Below, piece after piece: positions 6,020 through 21,533 of a stretch of DNA of 64,000 bases. Origin of the DNA: Ylistrum balloti (taxonomy: Eukaryota). Every line of letters begins with the position of its first letter. Position 1 is the stretch's first letter. A model generated the notes under the pieces. It saw nothing but the letters and a program-made list of their open reading frames with translations. It had not been told where the DNA came from and did not search any database. The stretch lies in NCBI RefSeq assembly GCF_031769215.1, contig NW_026782116.1, positions 1,488,001 to 1,552,000 of the forward strand, read 5' to 3'. The position numbers and the translations under genes were made by a program.

Positions 6020-9000
6020 ATGGCAGCAAAAGAATGTGGCGAAGTTTTCATTTCCTATAGCAGCGTTGATATCACCCTGGTAAAGAACATACAAGACTGC
6101 TTAAAGAAAAATGGTAAGTTAATTAGTTATATTATTGTTGAAATATGCTTTGCTTAGTTAAAACACGAAGAAAAAAATTCCAACTGCCGAAATACAAACG
6201 GTGCTTTTATTTACTGCTCCGTGTAGCTAACTCCTTTATGAATAATTCATAAGTAACGTTAAATATTCCATTGAATAAATATTCTGGTGTCGGTTGGTGA
6301 CGAATATGAGACCTAAAGAGGCTATATGTTTGTTTATCACTCAGACTATGTAGACAAGAATCGCTTTGTGTTGCAAAATTAAATATATATATACATCTAA
6401 AGACGATTTCATAGACATATACACTCATTCACAATGTAACATTATCTTTTGACATATTGTAAATAGCTGATGATGATATAGTTTGGATGTGTGTGTGGGG
6501 GGGGGATAATAAAAAAAAATAAAGATTTTATTTTTAGAGCTTGTGACATTAATTAAACAAATGAATACGATATCACTATTGAGAAAGACCAAAAGATCTA
6601 CTCCTTGAGTAAGTAATATGAACAGTACCACGTTGATATCAATATGAGTTATCTTGTTTCCAGAAATCGATTGCGTTGTTGCCGATGATGTGAAAGCAGG
6701 AACTCACACACTAGATGTAATTGTACACTCCCTTTCAAGGAGTAAGGCATGTGTGTTTCTAGTGACCCCGGCTGCTTTGGAAAGTTCCTGGTTTGCTTTT
6801 GAAACTATCCTTACCTTAGAGAGATCGCACCAACGCGGTCAGCTGAATAGTGTGATCCTACTGCATAACGTAACTGAAGATGAGGTAACTTTTCCATAAA
6901 GTTGTATAAAAGATATACTAACGAATAACACATTTTAATACAAATTTAGAGTTAAGTGCCAAACAGAGTATTAAACTGCATCATACCATTGTTTTGCTCT
7001 TTTGAACTCGTCAGTGACGCTAAGCACATAAATTTTGAAGCCGACTGAACAAAACTCCAAAGAGATCGAAAGTAAAATCAAAATCAGGATTGGAAGATGC
7101 ACTAGCCATATAATTCACTACATTTCGTGTTTCATTTCTTTGATGTTTATAGGACAACGCCAAGTACACATGTATGTTCTGAACCGTGACATTATTCGAA
7201 TGAATTGAAACGTGACATGCAGGTTATATCAAACATCGGGGACTAAAAGTCTATGTTTACATTTATATGATCTTCTCACAGACAAATTTGTATTAAAAAT
7301 GAATTTCGTTTTTTAAATATCATTGAAAAGACAAAGAGAAAATATAAAGGCAAACCAGTAAGAAAACAGAAACAGAAAATTTTAAATCAGAATTTCTTAC
7401 TTTGAGATGTCCGAGCAGTGTATTTTTAAATAAATTTTGCTTTCAGCTTCCAAAGTTTGCCCTGTTTGACATGATTGATAAATATGAACTGGACCTGGAC
7501 GAGTTTGGACACTGGAATAATCAACAGATTAAACAGGTCATAAAGACAATCCAAGGTATCGAAGCTATTTAACTGCACGCTCGTGGCTGTAATTTTAATT
7601 CTGAACGTCGGCGTTATCTTGCATTTAATGTATTCAATTTTCTTGCTAAAACAACAACTTGAGTAGATTTCCATTTCCACGTTGTCAATATAAAATAGAA
7701 GAAATATACAGTGTCCTATTGTATAAAACAGTTTTTAACACTGCAATTGCAAATATAAGAAGTGCTTTTCAATTTCGAAAGATATTGTGAAGCATATTGT
7801 GGTGGCAATATGTATTCTTATAAATTCCAGAAGGGAAAAACATCGAATCTGAGTTACCGGTAGGGAATGTCGCCCATGCACAGGCCTGGTCTCATTATTT
7901 TGGATACCACCATATGATCCATCCACGTAGGTATTTTAATTGAATGACGTATTTATCATTTTATCGTTGCTAAAAACTCCGGAACATATACACTGTTTTA
8001 ATACGGCTGTCTCTAATAGAAAAACAAGTCTAGTTTATCAGGTTCCATTTCTTCTTTCAATAGCTGATTGAAAAGTAACAACCACAGCATACGTTGTTTC
8101 GTGTAGCTGAGGAATTGATAAGGTATAGATTGGAATCTTAATATAAGATCATAAAATTAACAAAATGTAAGAAATTTTAATTTTTAAAATATGCCATGGT
8201 TCTTTCAAGACATTTTGAATGTGTTTCTGTTGCGTTATGCGTTATATTTTATTGGTTTATAAGTCAGGCATGATTTCCCTTTTAAATTGTACGTCAAAAT
8301 GATTTGGTAGACATCTTTATAAATGATCGACGGATTGTAAGATAGAATTGATATGATACCTTTTTAACATTAATCTGATTCCCCTCCATTGGCATTTGAC
8401 ACCTCAGCTCAAATGGCTTTAACCAAATATTGCTTAACTGGTTACAATTTATAATTAACCAACCTTCTTTTACCACAAAAGCCATATGAGAAACTGAAAT
8501 TCAACGTTCGGACTTATACTATAGATCTTGCAGAGAAGATAAGAAGCTGTCCTTGGTATAGTAAAAACATGCCGATCGCAGTGTACGAACTGGTTCCCAA
8601 AGATTCCAATATACCGACATTCATAGAAGGACCGAACATAAAAAATATGGGATCACTTGGCGAAATCAAAGCGGAAGTAGCTGGCAACAAAAGAATATTC
8701 AGACTGAATGTGTACTGTATTGAAGATGGAGAAGAGGTACGAATAATACTTTAGGATTGGTAAATCTTAAAAAACTTTTCTGTGCAATACAAGTTCAGTT
8801 TGAATTGTCATGGTCTTGACTTAACTCTTTTGCTGTCGAGAGAACTACCTGCTAAGTTTTCATATATTCTTATTTTAGAATATGAGTTTGAACCTTTTTA
8901 AGTGAATAGCAGTCGTTGGATATAGCCACTTTTAAAAGCAGCATTTTCTTAAAACATTTTACCTTTTTTTTAAATTTTGTTCTTTTTATGTATTTAATTT

Positions 9001-9398
9001 TGAAAGAAATACTACTGCGTTGCACAGTATCCTAGTGTACTGGGTGCAATTTACAAGATGACCAAGTCTCCCATGATCGACCTGGACGAGCCGCACACAA
9101 TTCTGCAGGTTGCTCGATTTTACTATACTCTACAGTCCATACTCCAACACTCAAACGTTGAGGGATGCCGAAACCAGGCTAAACTCCTGTGGCTTGACGG
9201 TAATATATCAAGGAGATAAAGTAGCTTGTAGTAATGAAAATGAGCAGTGGAGAAAAAAGTTCACATTGTATCTGTTTTATATTATATAAGAATAAGATCA
9301 CATTTTAATTATTTAATTTTTTTGTTATTTCATCCATGCTTTCAGGCTCTGAAGCAGCAACGAGTGTACTGTTAAAGGCAGTTAAGAGAGATGTTAAG
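6020..9398 (+). CDS. STING1: TIR-STING unit 1: N-terminal TIR domain plus STING cyclic-dinucleotide-binding domain, no transmembrane region
   Basis: Phase-consistent exons: 6020-6113, 6664-6884, 7447-7555, 7831-7926, 8525 (or 8534)-8736, 9007-9199, 9346-9398. TIR motifs: EVFISYS, SKACVFLVTPAALESSWFAFET. STING motifs: LPVGNVAHAQAWSHYFGYHHMIHP (human STING [20 protein letters not shown]), YELVP, AGNKRIFRLNVY, YCVAQYPSV, QVARFYYTLQSIL. The last exon ends at a GT donor with no stop codon. Confidence 0.9.
6971..7250 (+). repeat. Dispersed repeat family A copy in STING intron 2
   Basis: Matches 33473-34030 at several anchors: ttaaactgcatcatac, actcgtcagtgacgctaag, aaattttgaa.cc, aacgc.aagtacacatgtat, ggactaaaagtc. 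Confidence 0.65.
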
Positions 9399-10880: not shown

Positions 10881-11110
10881 AAGTCCTGTTTGCCTTCGTG
10901 CAGTAAAAAGAATTCCTGTTTGGCTTCATATTTGAACAAGAAGCCATGTTTGGCTTCAGGCATGAACAAGAAGTCCTGCTTGGCTTCAGACATTAACAAG
11001 AAACTCTGTTTGGATCCATGCTTTGATAAGAAGTCATGTTGGCTTCATAAATTAAAAAAAACACTGTTTGGTTTCATACATTAAGAAAAAGATATGTCTG
11101 GCGTTATACA
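10881..11110. repeat. Degenerate 30-bp minisatellite, about 8 copies
   Basis: aagtcctgtttggcttc variants recur at 10881, 10911, 10941, 10971, 11001 and 11031. Confidence 0.85.
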
Positions 11111-11835: not shown

Positions 11836-14800
11836 AGAACAGGGTTTCAAACTTTGGTTACGGATCTGCAAAAAGTCCTTCACACATTAGAAGATGGCCT
11901 ACCAAATAAGGAATACGAAGCGACTATCCTATACAACAGTGATGATGCAAAGTCCAATGAAATATGTGACCAAATTGAGAAACATCTTCTGAAGAAAAAT
12001 GTACGCCTTTTCCCGTCTCCGAATAAGCCAGGGACGAGACCATTTACAGGTAAATATTTAAATCCTGAAACAACAAGGAAGTACTAATATGGGAACATAA
12101 TCATAGTCCAAACTCAAATTCAATAAAACTAGGCTAAAATGTGAAATAAAGAGAAATTTATACAGTGACTCCTGAAAAAGTAAATGAAGAATAAGACTTA
12201 TCTTCAACGACACCTTATATGTAAATATTAGTTAATCCAAGTACACGATGTTCACAGATAAGAACAAGATATATAACAAATTAGTATGCGTTTATAATCT
12301 TTCATACCTTCCATATAGTATAATAAAGGATTTAACCTATTAAGAATATATATGCTTATAGCGATGGAAGAGGCGGCAGAAAAAGCACGATGGCTAATTC
12401 TGATCGTTACTCAAGACAGCCTCATCGACAACGATGTGTTTAAAATGCAGACGATGGCTTTGATAGCGAACAGCGTACACAGTAAGAAAGTGCGCGTCAT
12501 TCCAGTAACAGACAAGATATCTGCAGATGATATTTTACCAGACTTTTTGAAGTGGGTAACTTACATCGACATACAGACAACAGGATTTGAAAATCGTGTT
12601 TTAAAAGCACTGAGAGGTATATTGTGCTGTAGCTATTTTATCACCATTTCATTCGAGCAGTTTTTTTCTTATTAGTATTAATTTAACAGTAGAGAGGGTG
12701 ACCATTTGAAATTTTTTTTGATGACGCGTTTTTCAAGTATATCGGGGGAAAATTCATTTTTGACTAGAATCTGTTGGTCTGTCTCTACCGCGGTAACTGT
12801 TTTAAACTGACAATTTATAATATTGGTATTAATCTGTTAAAATTTTATATCGTCTTCATTTTCATATGAGTAATTGCTTGTAAAAAAAGTATCCGCATTG
12901 TGGCAAATGTCTTCGCTGTTTTATTTTTAAGGTGAAGACATCGAGCTGGCATTAGACGGGGGTCTCATCCCTGCTGGAAATGTTGGCTATGGCTTGGCCT
13001 GGGGTTATGTCACCAATTATCTGAAGGTTGTTCTTCCAAGTGAGTAATGTTTTCTACTGTATAGATGGTTATTTTCGTGGAGACGTTATTTTCGCTATTA
13101 CGTGAAAAAATAAGACATGTGTGTATTCAATGTATTTTTAAATTCAGATTGTGATTTGTTTATTTATTGAAATAGAATAGGCGTCTTAAACGCAAGTTGT
13201 CGCGAAAAGTTCGACTCGTGCAAAAACCAGCTAAACGGTATCTAAACCCGCTGATAAATTTCAGGGTATATATCACAAGGTATCTGACCAACAGATTTAT
13301 ATCAAGTTTTGGGTATAAATCATAAGGTTTCTGACCAACGGATCTATATTACGTTTAGGGTATAAAGCACAAGATTTCTGACCAACAGATGTATATTACG
13401 TTTAGGGTATAAACCACAAGGTTTCTGACCAACGGATATATGTCAAGTTTAGGGTATAAATCACAAGATAAGCGACCAACAGATATATGTCACGTTTAGG
13501 GTATAAATCACAAGGTTTCTGACCAACAGATATATATCAAGTTTAGGGTATAAATCATAAGGTTTCTGACCAACGGATCTATATTACGTTTAGGGTATAA
13601 ATCACAAGGTTTCTGACCAACAGATATATATCAAGTTTAGGGTATATATCACAAGGTATCTGACCAACAGATATATATCAAGTTCTGGGATTCATTTGGA
13701 ACATCTGTAGGTAGGATTTCTGTCTAAACAAAACATTGACATCACGTTCCATAGGGGAGGGGTTCAATTAACATGTCTCTATAAATTGACATTATCACGA
13801 ATTTATGAATAGGGATTTCTGTAATATTCAACGCAAAAGAGCAGCGTGATGATTTATCTCAATGTGTTTCTTTCAGAATTAGAACATTTACGGAATTTGT
13901 TAAAACAAAAAGCAGGCAACATGTGTATGTGCCCGAGCAAGCTATTTTTGTTGGTACCGAAAACATGTTACTGTCCAGGAAGGATCAAGAATGAGCATGT
14001 AACGCACGTGTATTCGAGTGAAGAGATAAGCGACTGTCAAGGTGGGGCAGACATCATAAAAGGTCTGGATATGTATAGCATTTCAAAGGAAGGAAACGTA
14101 AGAGAATAACATTGAATCCAATTCACTGTTTTTCCTTTCTTTCTTTTTCTTTTTTTATTTTGCTTAACTAAATTAAACACTATTAATGTAAAATGTGTTC
14201 TGTTTCTGGTATTTGTCTATTACTGATATTTAAATGTTTGTGCAAGAGACACACAAATCCGTCAGATATTTCAAGTACTGAATTAAGCTGCATTACACAG
14301 CTGGTTTGTTCTTCAAGAACTTATCAATGATTTACTAATACTAAATCAGGTCGCTGTATGAACAGAAATTTTTAACATATACCTGTATGTATAAAGCGGG
14401 TATTTGTATAATGTTCAAATATGTGGTTCTTTTTTATTATTATGTGCAATACAGAAACACATATTGTTAATTATCATGTTATCTGGCTAACAACATCTGC
14501 GTCGAGTTGGTAAGATCTTCCAACAGACTATTGGCATACCTATGAGAACCAACTGCGCCCCTCTGTTGGCTGATTTGTTTTTGTTTTCATACGAGGCTGA
14601 ATTCATTGAAGAGCTTTTCAAAACAGGTTACACAGACCTTGCTAAATCGTTTAATTTCACCTTCAAGAAATTTATTGACTTCGTCCATCGTAAATATCCA
14701 CCAGAACTGGAAATCAAAGACATGGCAGACTCTTCAACACCAGCTGCTTATCTCAATCTTTTCAAATTATCAAATTTTCAAATTATCGTCAACTGACGGG

Positions 14801-15908
14801 GTTCAAATGATGCAGGTTTAGGAAAATTATGGGAAAGTTTTATGGTCGCCATTATGATCTCACTGAGAAATATTTCATTTCTGTTTGACATGAAACTGGA
14901 CGTATTTGATACTCGTGAGTTTTCCTGTTGGTTCGGTTGTTATATACCTTGCTCTCATTAGAGAATATGACATAACTTATTTGCATTGAAGAAGGTTTAC
15001 ATGCTTACTACTCCGGAACACCTGATCTTATTCGTCTCCGTGTAAATAATTCTTTAGTTCATATTTTGCCCTTATTCCGCCCTAGTTTTGTTTAATGTGA
15101 GTTTGAATTATGATTATGTTGCCATGTTGCTATTTTCTTGATGATTATTTTTATAGATATACAATTTCTTTGGACAATATCCTGCACCGTTACGCTGTCT
15201 TCATGCGATGAACGATTGCATGATAGCTGGGATCAATCCAGAATCTATGGCAAGGGAATGTGAACGATTCTGTGATACCCTTCTAGATCTCCTGCATGGC
15301 CCAATAGGTGGTGGTCTTCAAAGCAAATGCGAACTTGTCTTCTTTGATGGTAAACACTTTTACTTTTCTGTCTGTAATTACGTGAAAAAACCCCACCAGA
15401 ATTACTCCCCTTGTCAAGTAAATTTTCAATTCAATTCAAAATTAATATGACGGGGAACCACTAGAATTAAAATACGGCAAATGCACATGAAAAGTCAGAT
15501 TCTTTGCAGTAAAAAGTTTTTCTACTTATTCGACAGAATTTTACATAGCAACCCTTGTCAAGCCAATCATCTAATGACATGTTATAGCCAATTTAACGAG
15601 CATCACAATGACCTTCCGACACATAAGAATCAGTATCTCGCCCTTAGGATTAAATAATTCCCCAATATAGTCCTAATGACGAGCATAAACCATTAAAAGA
15701 TATTTTATTTACCTGGTTATCACAAAACCATGTATCAGTTTGTATTAAAGAACTTCTTAACCTTTTAGACGAAGTCTCCAACGACCTGCAAATGCAGTTG
15801 CTGCCAAGGTTGTCTAATCAGGTCGATCCCAAAGAGACAAAGCTGAAACGGAAATCTGGACATGACGATAGGAAAGATGAACTGAAGCAAGCTAAGATGA
15901 TGAACTGA
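11836..15908 (+). CDS. STING1: TIR-STING unit 2: divergent TIR plus divergent STING domain; probably the C-terminal half of the same gene as unit 1
   Basis: Phase-consistent exons: 11836-12049, 12362-12616, 12932-13039, 13877-14097, 15157-15349, 15769-15908 (TGA). TIR motifs: YEATILYN, ARWLILIVT, VRVIPV, LPDFLKWVTYIDI. STING motifs: PAGNVGYGLAWGYVTNYLKVVLP, KLFLLVP, FFGQYPAPL, ECERFCDTLLDLL. The first exon begins at a phase-0 acceptor with no Met. Confidence 0.88.
13259..13690. repeat. 47-bp minisatellite, about 9 copies, in a STING intron
   Basis: Unit tttagggtataaatcacaaggtttctgaccaacagatatatatcaag. ctgacc recurs at 13284 and 13331. Confidence 0.95.
14497..15055 (+). mobile_element. Degraded Penelope-like retroelement fragment (RT core plus 3' end) in a STING intron
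   Basis: Translation IGIPMRTNCAPLLADLFLFSYEAEFI...YPPELEIKD...AAYL matches the GIPMGTNCAPLLADLFLYSYE motif of PLE-type RTs. It is internally deleted and frameshifted. Confidence 0.7.
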
Positions 15909-16327: not shown

Positions 16328-17859
16328 TATACTAAAAGGATAAAGAAACGCAGGGTGAACTTTAAACCAGAAATTAAGTATGATATCGGGCTTCATTTAA
16401 AACGAAATTTTGAATACTTACAGATAAATTAAAGCTTAAAAATTTCCAAAGTCTGTATTTTGCATCTGAAAATTGGTTTAGAGGTACTAACGATTAAATT
16501 GAATGGACCCATAGGATTTTGAAATTGAAATTGAACTGAGTCATCAATATCTTGCGTGTCCGCCGTTTGCTGTGGTCACGGCCCTTATTCTTCTGGTCAA
16601 AGTGTTCATGAGAGCGTTAATCCGTCTTATGGGGATGTTGTCCCACTCTTCAATCAGAGTTCTGGTCAACTGCTCTCGAGTAGCAGGGGGTGGCTGGCGC
16701 TTTCGAACCTGTCTATCCAACTGGTCCCAAAGACGCTCGATCGGGGACAAATCAGGGCTATATGGCGGCCAATCTAGTGGTTGAATGTTGTTGTTGGCCA
16801 GAAAGACTTGGCAAATCCTTGCTACGTGGGGCCTAGCATTATCCTGCTGGAGGGTTAGATTATGCTGCTGTAAGAAAGGGATAACGTGGGGTCGAAGGAT
16901 CTCATCTCTATACTTAGCTGCTGTTAAATTGCCATCAATAACAACCAATTGTGATTTTAACCCGTGTGAGATTCCTCCCCACACCATTACTGAAACGCCC
17001 CCAAGCCTATCCCTCTCTACAACGAAAGCGTCCGTAAAACGTTCGCCACGACGAAGGTAGACACGTTGACGGCCGTCAGATCGATAAAGACAGAATCGAG
17101 ACTCGTCCGTGAAGAAAACTTGTCTCCACTGCCTCAGTGGAAACCGTCGTGGAGCATGTGCAGCGACCCAGGCCATACGACGCTGACGTCGAGCAGGGGT
17201 AAGGTGTGGACCTACGAAGGGCGACGTGCTCTTACACCAACTTCTCGTAATCGATTCCTTACAGTTTTTGAACTTATAGGACGCCCATGATTTCCACGAA
17301 CATAAATGCACTCTCAACGGCAGTAAGGCGCCGATTACGCACATGAGAGACGACGATATAGCGATCCTGACGTCGTGACGTTACGCGCGGACGTCCTGAC
17401 CTAGGTCGATCGGCCAATCGCCCAGTTTCCCGAAGACGTCTTACATGACGTTCTATGGTGGAAACATTAACACCAAAGTGCCTAGCAACCTGATTTTGCA
17501 GCTGTCCTTGCATCAGCATCTGAATGGCCTGACCCCTCTGAACTTCTGTGAGTCGTGCCATTCTTAAAACGAATCAAATTCTTAATTAATTTTAGGGAAG
17601 CAGTTAGTCTGTATAAAGACTAACGAAGAGTGACTTGACCAACGCTGCATGAGACCAGAACAACACGACGCACGAAATTCTTGTTTTTTCCTTCCTCCAT
17701 TTACCAGAGCTGCGCACTGTACCGTGACTAAATTTTCGATACATGACAAAGTGTAATATGACCTAATTACTCAATCCACAAAGTTTCACTTTATTTAGAG
17801 AACGCGTTTTAAAATATCGGAATAAATATTACCCTGCGTTTCTTTATCCTTTCAGTATA
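16328..17859 (-). mobile_element. Full-length Tc1-family DNA transposon (~1.53 kb), inactive
   Basis: 29-bp TIRs at 16328-16356 (TATACTAAAAGGATAAAGAAACGCAGGGT) and 17831-17859, with one mismatch. TA flanks on both sides. Contains a transposase gene. Confidence 0.93.
16544..17561 (-). pseudogene. Tc1 transposase (DD34E) with two single-base frameshifts
   Basis: N-terminal HTH with GRPR, then FTDESRF, VMVWGGI, QQDNARPH and SPDLSPIE, with 34 residues between the second D and the E. The frame breaks near 17300 and 17215; the middle segment VRGNHGRPISSKTVRNRLREVGVRARRP is in a third frame. Confidence 0.92.
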
Positions 17860-19699
17860 TATAATAATAATCTATAACCAGATCACTTTTGAAAAGCTAA
17901 GCAACGGCCATTAATTCCCAAGCTCTTTCATACTCATGAACTTATGAAATATTGTTCAATATCTGTCACCCATTCACAAACATAAAGCACACATTCAAGT
18001 CAGGATGTCTTGGATTGCAGTGATACGAAAATTGTCATCTTAGCCATATCTATGACAAGTTGTCATCAAGACATTTTTCCTTACTTAGTTATATCTTATC
18101 AAGAAAATAATTGGTATAAAAACACCTGGTCTTATATCAATTTTCATACTCACTAATATCTTATATCCTGTTAGGAAATGCTCCGCCGTTTAATGAGTAT
18201 ATATGTTTATATATGATTTATATCATGTGTTTTTTAATTTGCTTTGTTTTCTTTCAATCCTTGTCAAAAAGTTGTTGATAACCGAAGGTTGTTTATAATC
18301 AGGCTATATTTTGAGTTTTATGCTTATTGTTTCATATTTGTCAAGTTTGTCCTAACCAATAAATTCAACTTCCAAAGAATTCCACTCATTTATAACATAA
18401 TCACACATTGGCGATGAAACTGCTTTGCAATTTGTTCGACTGCCATACATATTAATTGCATTTTTACATTAAAATCAGTTACAAACTAACTAACGACTTT
18501 TCTTTTTTTCAAATCGGCACCAAATAGCACAACCTTTATATTTCGGAGGGTAGGGACCTTGTATTGCTTCAGTAATTCTCAGTATGCTTCTTGAATTGGG
18601 CCTACATGGCCCCTCTGACTCATAGTACGTATCACAATTTGCGGTTCCTTAATATCCGCTTTTCCCGAGTTTATAACACGCTGTCATTTATGGCGTACAG
18701 TAAGAGTGCTTTGCAGTCTTACTCACTAGCATGTTATCTTTAGTTTCTTTGTTAATGGTTTTACTGAAGCAAGTCTACGTTATACTCTTGTCCATCAGAA
18801 AAGTGCCTCAGTCGAATCACAGGTACCTGTAAGGAAGGTCTTATTCTTGTGCTTGATAATAAGTATTGTTTTGACTGTGATTTCAGATTAAAGGTTAAAA
18901 AGCTGAGAGGCAGGTTAAAGAGGTATTCCGCACAAGTGTTCCCTTAACCTGCGTTAGATAACATTCTTTAGCGTTTAATATTATTGGAAAATATCGCAAA
19001 TATCATACTGAGTGAACTTATGCTGCAGCATAACAGTACAGAGATATCTTGAAAAAAATATAAGTTTTGACGCTATTAGTTCAATCCCACACATAAGAAT
19101 CATAATGCTTCGTTGAAGATACTTTGTTTATACACTCATATATCCGATCCTTTCTACAGTATAAGAAGACACCAAATAAACAATTTTGTAATCTACGTTA
19201 AACCATCATATTTCGTCTTTAACACTGTTGATAGTTACACACATTGCTATAACATCTTGAGGGCGTTTATTTAGAAAACATCATTATACACATACGACTT
19301 TTTGCAAGTTCAAGTTTTAAGGTTATCTATATCTTTAGAATAAAAACACAAATGGTATAAACACCACCGATAGGGGTATCATATAAAGGTCAAAAGTTTT
19401 GTTGCCATCTCCATGTATGACAAGGAAAAATCCTTTAAATACAAGATAAGCAGGTAAAAAGGGAAATAAGTCTTATTCGCTTAAAGTGTATTTACTGTTT
19501 ACTGTCATTTTTCCACTGCCAAACGATATATTTTGATGGACATTTTTAAAATAATGAAGCATACCATATAGATTGATAAAACTTCAGGATTGTTCCTTGA
19601 ACTTTGTAGTAATAATTGACTTGCAACTGTTAAAATTATAGAACTTTCGTAACTACAAAAATCAATAATATATCATATCGATTAAAACATGAAACATGA

Positions 19700-20516
19700 G
19701 AGATCTCAGTACGAAGATCCATGGTAAATAATACCATTAAAGATCCCCGTGACACACGAGCGATCTCGGTATACAGATCAATACTAGATAGTACAACTAA
19801 AGAGTCCCTGTGACACACGAGCGATCTCGGTATTAAGATCAATACTAGATAGTACAACTAAAGAGTCCCTGTGACACACAAGTGATCTCGGTATAAAGAT
19901 CAATAATTGATAGCACCACTTAAAGATTCCCTGTGACACACAAGTGATCTCGGTATAAAGATCAATAATTGATAGCACCACTTAAAGAGTCCCTGTGACA
20001 CACGAGCGATCTCGGTATTAAGATCAATACTAGATAGTACAACTAAAGAGTCCCTGATAGTACAACTAAAGAGTCCCTGTGACACACAAGTGATCTCTGT
20101 ATTAAGATCAATACTAGATAGTACAACTAAAGAGTCCCTGTGACACACGAGCGATCTCGGTATTAAGATCAATACTAGATAGTACAACTAAAGAGTCCCT
20201 GTGACACACGAGCGATCTCGGTATTAAGATCAATACTAGATAGTACAACTAAAGAGTCCCTGTGACACACGAGCGATCTCGGTATTAAGATCAATACTAG
20301 ATAGTACAACTAAAGAGTCCCTGTGACACACAAGTGATCTCTGTATTAAGATCAATACTAGATAGTACAACTAAAGAGTCCCTGTGACACACAAGTGATC
20401 TCGGTATTAAGATCAATACTAGATAGTACAACTAAAGAGTCCCTGTGACACACAAGTGATCTCGGTATTAAGATCAATACTAGATAGTACAAATTAATAG
20501 TCCATGTGACACACGA
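19700..20516. repeat. 61-bp minisatellite, about 13 copies, with one partial unit near 20040
   Basis: Unit ctcggtattaagatcaatactagatagtacaactaaagagtccctgtgacacacgagcgat. ctcggt recurs at 19765 and 19826. Confidence 0.95.
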
Positions 20517-20541
20517 GTGATGCTCCAGGTATGTTTTTCAG

Positions 20542-21533
20542 GAATAAATGGTGACAACTACAACTACGACACCAACAACACCAACAACTTCAACACCAGC
20601 AACTACGATAACAACAACAATTTCAGCAACAACAACTACGACAACAACACCAACAACTACGACAACAACACCAACAACAACAACACCAACAACTACGACA
20701 ACAACACCAACAACTACAACACCAACAACTACGACAACAACACCAACAACTACGACAACAACACCAACAACTACAACACCAACAACTACGACAACAACAC
20801 CAACAACTATGACAACAACACCAACAACTACAATACCAACAACTACGACAACAACACCAGCAACAACTACAACAATACAGTCTGCAACTGCGCAACAACC
20901 AAGAAAGAAACGACCTGGTACAAGGAAGGACTTCAATGGAAATAACAAAGGTATCTCCGATTTGTGCTTACATACAGAAAGATGGTCCGTTATATCATAT
21001 GGATTATCTACGGGTATGGCCTTCACACTCACGCGGTTTTCTTCCCTTTAATGAAACCGTTCTGTATCATTATCAGCATCGAATTTTTTTTTTTTTTTTT
21101 TTGTTCGGGGAATATTTCAATGATATAAACACCATAAATTGGGTTGTTGTAGATTTCAGTATAACACAAATATGTGGACTAATCAGTAAAAGGAAGTCCA
21201 ACGATGTTTTAATGGCATTTCCATGTCACATGTCACGACTTCATATTTGACAATTTGAACAATTTAAGCATATATTGGTTATATTGACTCTACAATTCAA
21301 ACAAAAAAATGTTGTATGGTTGAAGTTTATTTTATGTTGTCTATCATGACAATAGATGTGGCAGGTACGCACTCCATAACAACGTCATTCAACCGAACCA
21401 TGCCAATATCACTACATAAATATTTCAGGGGTATCAGTTTCAGCGATAGCCGTTGCAATATCATGGTGTTCGTTGCTGTGGTTGTAGTGGTTGTTTCTGT
21501 AATTGTATACATGAAGATACGAAAAAATAAAAG
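20542..21533 (+). other. Candidate exons of a Thr-rich (mucin-stalk) single-pass membrane protein, possibly a pseudogene
   Basis: ACA-rich block at 20548-20880 reads TTTTTP repeats, with a phase-1 donor at 20917. A hydrophobic segment VFVAVVVVVVSVIVY followed by basic MKIRKNK ends at donor AG|gtatgc (21533). No upstream exons were found. Confidence 0.35.

Follow-up and report, generated by a model that had tools for sequence, protein, structure and literature searches.

To our knowledge, every STING protein whose ligand binding has been studied acts as a symmetric homodimer, in which the phosphates of the ligand are clamped by Arg238 of both lids. Arg238 and Tyr240 are ligand contacts, and the double mutant R238A/Y240A is the standard control that is dead for cyclic GMP-AMP (cGAMP) binding (PMC9417302). 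Bivalves have very large repertoires of cGAS-like receptors (cGLRs) together with several STING genes (PMC9980059). The doubled TIR-STING architecture is already known, and a class with two STING and two TIR domains has been described in oysters (PMC11103948). Here, we describe a doubled gene, LOC132549838, of the saucer scallop Ylistrum balloti, located in a stretch of 64,000 nucleotides of contig NW_026782116.1 (positions 1,488,001 to 1,552,000 of the forward strand). We refer to this whole stretch as the window and use its own coordinates throughout, while residues of the STING fold are numbered as in the human protein. The second STING domain of the encoded protein (unit 2) has a lid without any arginine, a state that is shared by all the scallop unit-2 domains sampled and that has been maintained by selection.

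The arginine-free lid of unit 2

A word search with the lid exon, limited to proteins of similar length, gave no match. The gene was identified by searching one exon of unit 2 (exon c) against 1.84 billion representatives, which led to its relatives and to the “uncharacterized protein” XP_060069794.1 (P0002), whose residues map exactly onto exons of the window. The protein is cytosolic, with the domain order TIR-STING-TIR-STING, and unit 2 is its C-terminal domain. Pfam and fold analyses of the joined chain used this public protein, which lacks three residues of unit 2 (see below), while the exons were also searched singly.

In a profile alignment to the lids of human STING (DRAGIKDRVYSNSIY) and oyster TIR-STING (DRAGIIERQYKNTIY), the unit 2 lid has Cys at R232, Ile at R238, and Lys at Y240. 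Neither of the two lid arginines is present and there is no aromatic residue at 240. The alignment obtained with hidden Markov models against PDB structures and the one obtained with MAFFT place the anchor Tyr245 and residues 238 and 240 identically, and the one-residue offset between them is confined to the N-terminal half of the lid. The alternative register gives Gln at R232, and neither of them places an Arg in the lid, so that an alignment artefact was rejected as the cause of its absence. Position 232 is the weakest criterion of canonical binding, since an Arg is missing there from Mytilus unit 2 as well. The residues that define the canonical clamping of cyclic dinucleotides are missing from unit 2 and, given that the phosphate-clamping Arg238 is gone, we infer that this domain would be unable to bind cyclic dinucleotides in the symmetric mode of canonical STING. 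The first STING domain (unit 1) keeps Arg238, with Phe at 240, in its lid (AGNKRIFRLNVY), and on these residues the two units of the chain are unequal.

The identity of unit 2 as a STING domain is far beyond chance. It scored 57.8 bits against Pfam STING_LBD (PF15009; cut-off of 27 bits), covering profile positions 1 to 170 of 182 with residues 456 to 645 of P0002, and three of its exons (a to c) matched the same profile colinearly (1-20, 33-64, and 103-158) when searched exon by exon. The best PDB match of the helix-1 exon was the oyster TIR-STING structure 6WT6 (E value of 1.4e-4). A profile built from 11 unit-2 domains and aligned to solved structures recovered 6WT6 at 6.6e-35 and human STING at ca. 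1e-28. The AlphaFold2 model of the same segment of P0002, computed from a 29-row alignment, had a predicted local distance difference test score (pLDDT) of 86.3 and a predicted template modeling score (pTM) of 0.84, and Foldseek matched it to the ligand-binding domains of human STING with a probability of 1.0 and template modeling scores of 0.73 to 0.82. Within the pocket, the residue table shows that Tyr163, Tyr167, and Pro264 are retained. Tyr167, on the dimer helix alpha1, stacks on the base of the ligand, and 27 of 29 domains have Tyr in this column, with Phe in the other two. The other pocket substitutions with respect to human STING are S162 to Gly, G166 to Asn, E260 to Gln, T263 to Ala, and T267 to Cys. 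In canonical STING, Glu260 and Thr263 contact the base. Gln at 260 and Ala at 263 also occur in other bivalves whose unit 2 retains Arg238, and the floor of the pocket is conserved to the same degree in unit 2 of mussels and ark clams, where Arg238 is likewise kept. A TIR domain lies immediately N-terminal of unit 2 and there are no transmembrane helices, as in metazoan fusions of the TIR-STING type.

The window is AT-rich animal DNA (GC content of 0.31 to 0.42) with short exons, and the gene is organized as follows (Pfam cut-off for TIR_2, 28 bits):

6020-7554, + strand: start codon and first TIR domain (TIR1), in exons 6020-6112, 6663-6884, and 7447-7554 (exon mapping; Pfam TIR_2, 52.4 bits)
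7831-9398, + strand: STING unit 1, in exons 7831-7926, 8524-8736, 9007-9201, and 9348-9398 (tblastn of the unit-2 exons against the window, exon mapping, and alignment; Pfam STING_LBD, 58.1 bits)
11836-12616, + strand: second TIR domain (TIR2), directly upstream of unit 2 in the same chain, in exons 11836-12048 and 12361-12616 (exon mapping; Pfam TIR_2, 31.1 bits, residues 300-455)
12932-13039, + strand: unit 2 exon a, linker from TIR2 and helix alpha1 (AG at 12930-1, GT at 13040; STING_LBD positions 1-20), with helix 1 (GLAWGYVTNYLKVVLP) at 12991-13038, the Tyr167 equivalent at 13018-13020, and Asn in place of Gly166 at 13015-13017
13877-14097, + strand: unit 2 exon b, remainder of alpha1, first beta strands, and lid (AG at 13875-6, GT at 14098; STING_LBD positions 33-64; residues 488-560 of XP_060069794.1)
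14029-14076, + strand: unit 2 lid (SDCQGGADIIKGLDMY), with Cys (14035-7) at R232, Ile (14053-5) at R238, and Lys (14059-61) at Y240 (profile alignment, residue and codon tables)
15157-15349, + strand: unit 2 exon c, hairpin strand, pocket wall QYPAP, helices alpha2 and alpha3, and last beta strand (AG at 15155-6, GT at 15350; STING_LBD positions 103-158; aligns to human STING 260-312), with Gln at E260 (15175-15177), Ala at T263 (15184-15186), and Pro264 retained
15769-15908, + strand: unit 2 exon d, with the final helix, a basic tail, and the stop codon (AG at 15767-8, TGA at 15906-8; residues 622-667 of XP_060069794.1)

All the unit 2 exons have an open frame, compatible phases, and canonical AG/GT sites, as checked by script at the junctions. 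The public model opens exon c 9 nucleotides downstream, at 15166, with no AG in front of it, and thereby loses Ile-Tyr-Asn. The sole canonical acceptor is at 15155-6, and we place the start of the exon at 15157 because the resulting length of 64 residues recurs in five relatives. The same model omits exon 7831-7926, splicing 7554 to 8524. This exon, which carries helix alpha1 of unit 1 (LPVGNVAHAQAWSHYFGYHHMIHP), is intact, with an AG acceptor, a GT donor, and 96 nucleotides in frame. Its omission is either an annotation miss or genuine exon skipping, and the latter would delete the dimer helix of unit 1.

The initial annotation of this locus, made from the sequence alone, had described a near-canonical helix 1, a lid without Arg and without an aromatic residue at 240, Gln at 260, and Ala at 263, and the profile alignment and the residue table agree with it at each of these positions. 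Its intact frame and splice sites were borne out by the AG/GT found at every junction. The range that it had assigned to the domain, 12932-15349, does contain three of the exons but ends too early, as the fourth (15769-15908) adds the last helix.

A lid rebuilt once on the scallop stem

To place the lid in its family, we compared nine scallop unit-2 sequences: the one in the window, both halves of a paralogue from the same species (P0001), two from Pecten maximus, one from Mizuhopecten yessoensis, and three transcript contigs from public runs. The set spans at least three named species and several paralogue lineages. All nine lids follow the pattern GGAN-(I/V/M)-(I/L/V/P)-K-(S/T/G)-L-D-(I/M/V)-Y, with Asp for the Asn in the window gene. 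Position 238 is Ile, Val, or Met and position 240 is Lys in every one of them, while position 232 is variable and in most of them non-basic. Among 20 other domains of doubled bivalve proteins (11 unit 1, from scallops, mussels, an ark clam, and one unplaced contig, and nine unit 2, from Mytilus, Tegillarca, and the same unplaced contig), all had Arg at 238, and 17 had Tyr or Phe at 240.

In a maximum likelihood (ML) tree, unit 1 and unit 2 were split with a support of 100/100, and the tandem duplication is therefore older than the divergence of mussels, ark clams, and scallops. The scallop unit-2 domains formed one clade (100/99) on a long stem (0.70), and their sister group still has the Arg and the Tyr. 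This single clade, with a sister that retains both residues, shows that the lid was rebuilt once, on the scallop stem, where Arg238 changed to Ile, Val, or Met and Tyr240 to Lys, with no Arg at 232.

Three of the closest relatives with the same lid (P0021, P0004, and P0022) each consist of one uninterrupted open reading frame (ORF) on a contig of 2.3 to 3.7 kb. Their genomic relatives carry about a dozen introns, and for this reason we consider these contigs to be spliced transcripts. The paralogue P0001 (contig JAUZWB010000060.1) is modelled as a single protein of 1422 residues with four TIR-STING units. There is a gap of 5.4 kb between its exons at 10979 and 16414, and it may represent two neighbouring doubled genes merged by annotation. 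The lid is Arg-less in both of its unit-2 domains.

For the analysis of selection, codon columns were built after mapping each protein exon by exon to its own locus. Across all 36 pairs of unit 2, the proportion of nonsynonymous differences (pN) was 0.13 to 0.41 and that of synonymous differences (pS) 0.68 to 0.93, the latter being saturated. A finite pairwise ratio was obtained for no more than five pairs, of which two include the window gene. In the least saturated pairs, the ratio of nonsynonymous to synonymous rates (dN/dS) was 0.20 (window gene against P0003 of Pecten) and 0.12 (window gene against P0021). Given this saturation of synonymous sites, we relied on pN being far below pS, on an ML codon model (GY+F3X4+G4), and on relative-rate tests. 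The model gave an omega of 0.143 for unit 2 (177 codons, nine sequences) and 0.103 for unit 1 (132 codons, eight sequences). In Tajima relative-rate tests, the window lineage was no faster than its sisters (e.g., 19 versus 17 and 14 versus 14 unique changes; all chi-square values <3.84). Unit 2 is thus shown to be an intact and selectively maintained domain. A one-gene oddity or a pseudogene was rejected on the basis of the lid state shared among scallops, the placement in the tree, and the flat relative-rate tests.

The constraint extends to the lid itself. Among scallops, the mean pairwise identity of the 12-residue lid core is 0.76, compared with 0.51 over the domain. Of 143 sliding windows, only nine rank above the lid core, which is 10th, and all nine overlap helix alpha1, which makes the lid the second most conserved stretch. 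Its codons vary synonymously between species (GGT/GGA/GGC, GCA/GCC/GCG/GCT, AAC/AAT, CTG/TTG/CTT, and TAT/TAC). The columns conserved in scallops only include the lid Gly, Asn, Leu, and Asp, and also a loop, PVGxGLxxK. In scallops, the lid gained constraint rather than losing it. Being the second most conserved stretch, kept through synonymous changes and with several positions constrained in scallops only, the rebuilt lid appears to have some role of its own, as its sequence pattern suggests. The loop, in its longer form PVGxGLxxKCE, precedes the last beta strand (15259-15300 in exon c of the window gene, where it reads PIGGGLQSKCE), is conserved in scallop unit 2 only, and may have changed jointly with the lid.

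The initial annotation had treated the lid as a feature of one gene, which has to be replaced by a state common to all the scallop unit-2 domains sampled. Its view that unit 2 is maintained and not decaying holds, with an omega of 0.14, no rate acceleration, and an intact frame and splice sites, and the dN/dS comparison across relatives that it had proposed gave a value well below 1. It had further suggested maintenance for structure rather than for symmetric ligand binding. The departure from canonical symmetric binding stands, while maintenance for structure only is doubtful, with the lid itself so tightly conserved.

Possible roles of the second STING domain

We tentatively favour, at somewhat less than an even chance, the reading that unit 2 is the non-canonical half of an asymmetric two-domain ligand receptor formed with unit 1. 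A role in ligand sensing is favoured because conservation covers the floor of the pocket as well as the new lid. Unit 2 would then most likely still take part in sensing by pairing with unit 1, which would contribute Arg238 and the aromatic residue at 240 to one asymmetric pocket. The single conserved Lys of unit 2 would be its only basic lid contact, and the closure over the ligand would be relayed to the TIR domains. The full-length AlphaFold2 model of P0021, the closest complete relative (742 residues, derived from a transcript), had a pLDDT of 73.4 and a pTM of 0.68, with ca. 110 residues (ca. 15%) disordered. Such a pTM for four domains in spite of ca. 15% disorder implies, as far as a prediction can, that they are held in one compact arrangement. 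A more specific version, which we consider less probable still, is that these proteins are single-chain, intrinsically asymmetric receptors, with the canonical lid of unit 1 and the re-invented lid of unit 2 (Ile238 plus Lys240, motif GGANIIKSLDIY) closing over one pocket tuned to an asymmetric or non-cyclic signal of a bivalve cGAS-like enzyme. If true, it would be the first natural hetero-paired STING pocket.

Several points weigh against a sensing half-receptor. The structure search with the full-length model of P0021 matched unit 1 only (Z of ca. 21), and the pairing between unit 1 and unit 2 was not seen. Tyr167 and Pro264 are structural residues too, and their retention is therefore not proof of a working pocket. 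The lid is conserved and more hydrophobic (Ile-Ile-Lys-x-Leu), which would also be compatible with a ligand-blind domain whose pocket is plugged by its own lid. The saturated synonymous sites make omega a long-term average, and a very recent relaxation in the window gene is possible. Finally, a search of public runs yielded no RNA run for Ylistrum balloti, with one DNA-like run listed.

The plugged pocket belongs to a second explanation that we take seriously, with a probability of around a third, in which unit 2 is a ligand-blind pseudo-receptor. Its STING fold would be retained for no more than a supporting role towards unit 1 and the TIR domains, be it in dimerisation, as a scaffold, or as an inbuilt brake, and the hydrophobic lid would be conserved because it packs against another domain or fills the empty pocket of unit 2 itself. 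The loss of Arg238 and Tyr240 resembles the binding-dead mutant R238A/Y240A, most scallops have a non-basic residue at the variable position 232, and the unit 2 lid is predicted to be less ordered than that of unit 1 in the full-length model (blocks of 69-75 versus 87-88). The whole second module may even be the “pseudo” half: by eye, TIR2 (12361-12616) reads VFKMQTMAL, with Gln where TIR1 has a conserved Glu (SWFAFETIL). Inspected in the same way, TIR2 of most relatives also lacks this Glu, and the first TIR2 of P0001 has it (FQMETIS). However, the rank of the lid as second most conserved stretch, with constraint gained in scallops, would be unexpected for a scaffold-only domain unless the lid docks. 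The pocket floor is conserved as in the mussel and ark-clam domains with Arg238, and the omega of unit 2 is almost as low as that of unit 1. As a self-plugging hydrophobic lid would be conserved too, a ligand-blind scaffold and an asymmetric half-receptor are hard to separate by sequence. Were unit 2 ligand-blind, it would be, as far as we know, the first natural STING pseudo-receptor. This kind of regulation is familiar from pseudokinases, and we know of no case in the STING pathway.

It is improbable, though conceivable, that unit 2 is a receptor in its own right, with the unit 2 domains of two chains pairing with each other and using the Lys-containing lid to bind a different signal, such as a mononucleotide, a linear molecule, or one with less charge made by the expanded cGAS-like enzymes of bivalves. 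The conserved new motif, with its invariant Lys and Gly-Gly-Ala-Asn, would fit, as would the retained Tyr163 and Tyr167, the highly conserved dimer helix alpha1, and the cGLR and STING repertoires of bivalves (PMC9980059). Nevertheless, we found no sign here of self-pairing by unit 2, two phosphates would be poorly neutralised in a symmetric pocket whose lids offer two Ile238 and no more than two Lys, and the compact single-chain model (pTM of 0.68) would better suit intramolecular pairing. A decaying or untranscribed remnant of a duplicated domain is very improbable indeed, since the missing RNA run and a public gene model that is imperfect around two exons are outweighed by the open frame and canonical splice sites, a pN far below pS with an omega of 0.14, the lack of rate acceleration in the window lineage, and the same lid in nine sequences that include spliced transcripts of relatives.

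Repeats near the gene and comparison with known systems

The intron between unit 2 exons a and b contains a 47-bp tandem repeat with nine copies and 87% matches (13263-13684), and the one between exons b and c contains an ORF of 84 residues (14542-14796, + strand) that looks retroelement-like by eye and has no Pfam match. Directly downstream of the gene there is a Tc1/mariner-like transposase (16544-17561, - strand; DDE_3, 67.8 bits; HTH, 42.5 bits), probably a frameshifted copy, as the two domains are split over two overlapping ORFs. Further on, ca. 14 copies of a 61-bp unit form a tandem array of two blocks, and a CAA/ACA-rich minisatellite comes after it (19690-20521 and 20554-20875). The long Thr/Asn/Val-rich ORFs that the minisatellite produces in several frames are repeat artefacts and not genes.

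In a literature search, we found no published description of the scallop lid replacement, nor of any natural STING domain without Arg238. A whole animal family has replaced Arg238 in one of two fused STING domains and has kept the replacement in every scallop species and paralogue lineage sampled. Should the two domains pair, these proteins would be a natural experiment in asymmetric ligand recognition, with a bearing on the read-out of the large cGLR repertoires of bivalves. Either way, a concrete motif and a set of orthologues are available for testing.

Unit 2 shares with canonical metazoan STING (human, Nematostella, and C. gigas 8YDN) the fold, Tyr163, Tyr167, and Pro264, but it has no transmembrane domain, no C-terminal tail motif, and no lid clamps, and its E260 and T263 are replaced. 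The human mutant R238A/Y240A lacks the Arg and the Tyr at the same two contact positions (PMC9417302). There, the alanines are engineered and the protein is a symmetric homodimer, whereas the scallop lid arose naturally, carries Ile together with a conserved Lys, evolves under purifying selection, and is accompanied by a more canonical second domain in the chain. The TIR-STING of the oyster Crassostrea gigas (6WT6/6WT7) is likewise a soluble TIR followed by a STING domain, without a transmembrane part. Its structure 6WT6, the best solved match of the unit-2 profile, shares with unit 2 the alpha1 motif AWGY..(G/N)YLK, with Gly where unit 2 has Asn166. In contrast, the oyster protein is a single TIR-STING module whose lid, DRAGIIERQY, has both arginines and the tyrosine. 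The doubled TIR-STING-TIR-STING proteins of Mytilus and Tegillarca have the same four-domain order and an orthologous unit 2 that shares with that of scallops the Asn at G166, the Gln at E260, and the Ala at T263. However, the non-scallop unit 2 has Arg238 in nine of nine domains and Tyr or Phe at 240 in eight of the nine, and the Ile/Lys lid is found in scallops only.

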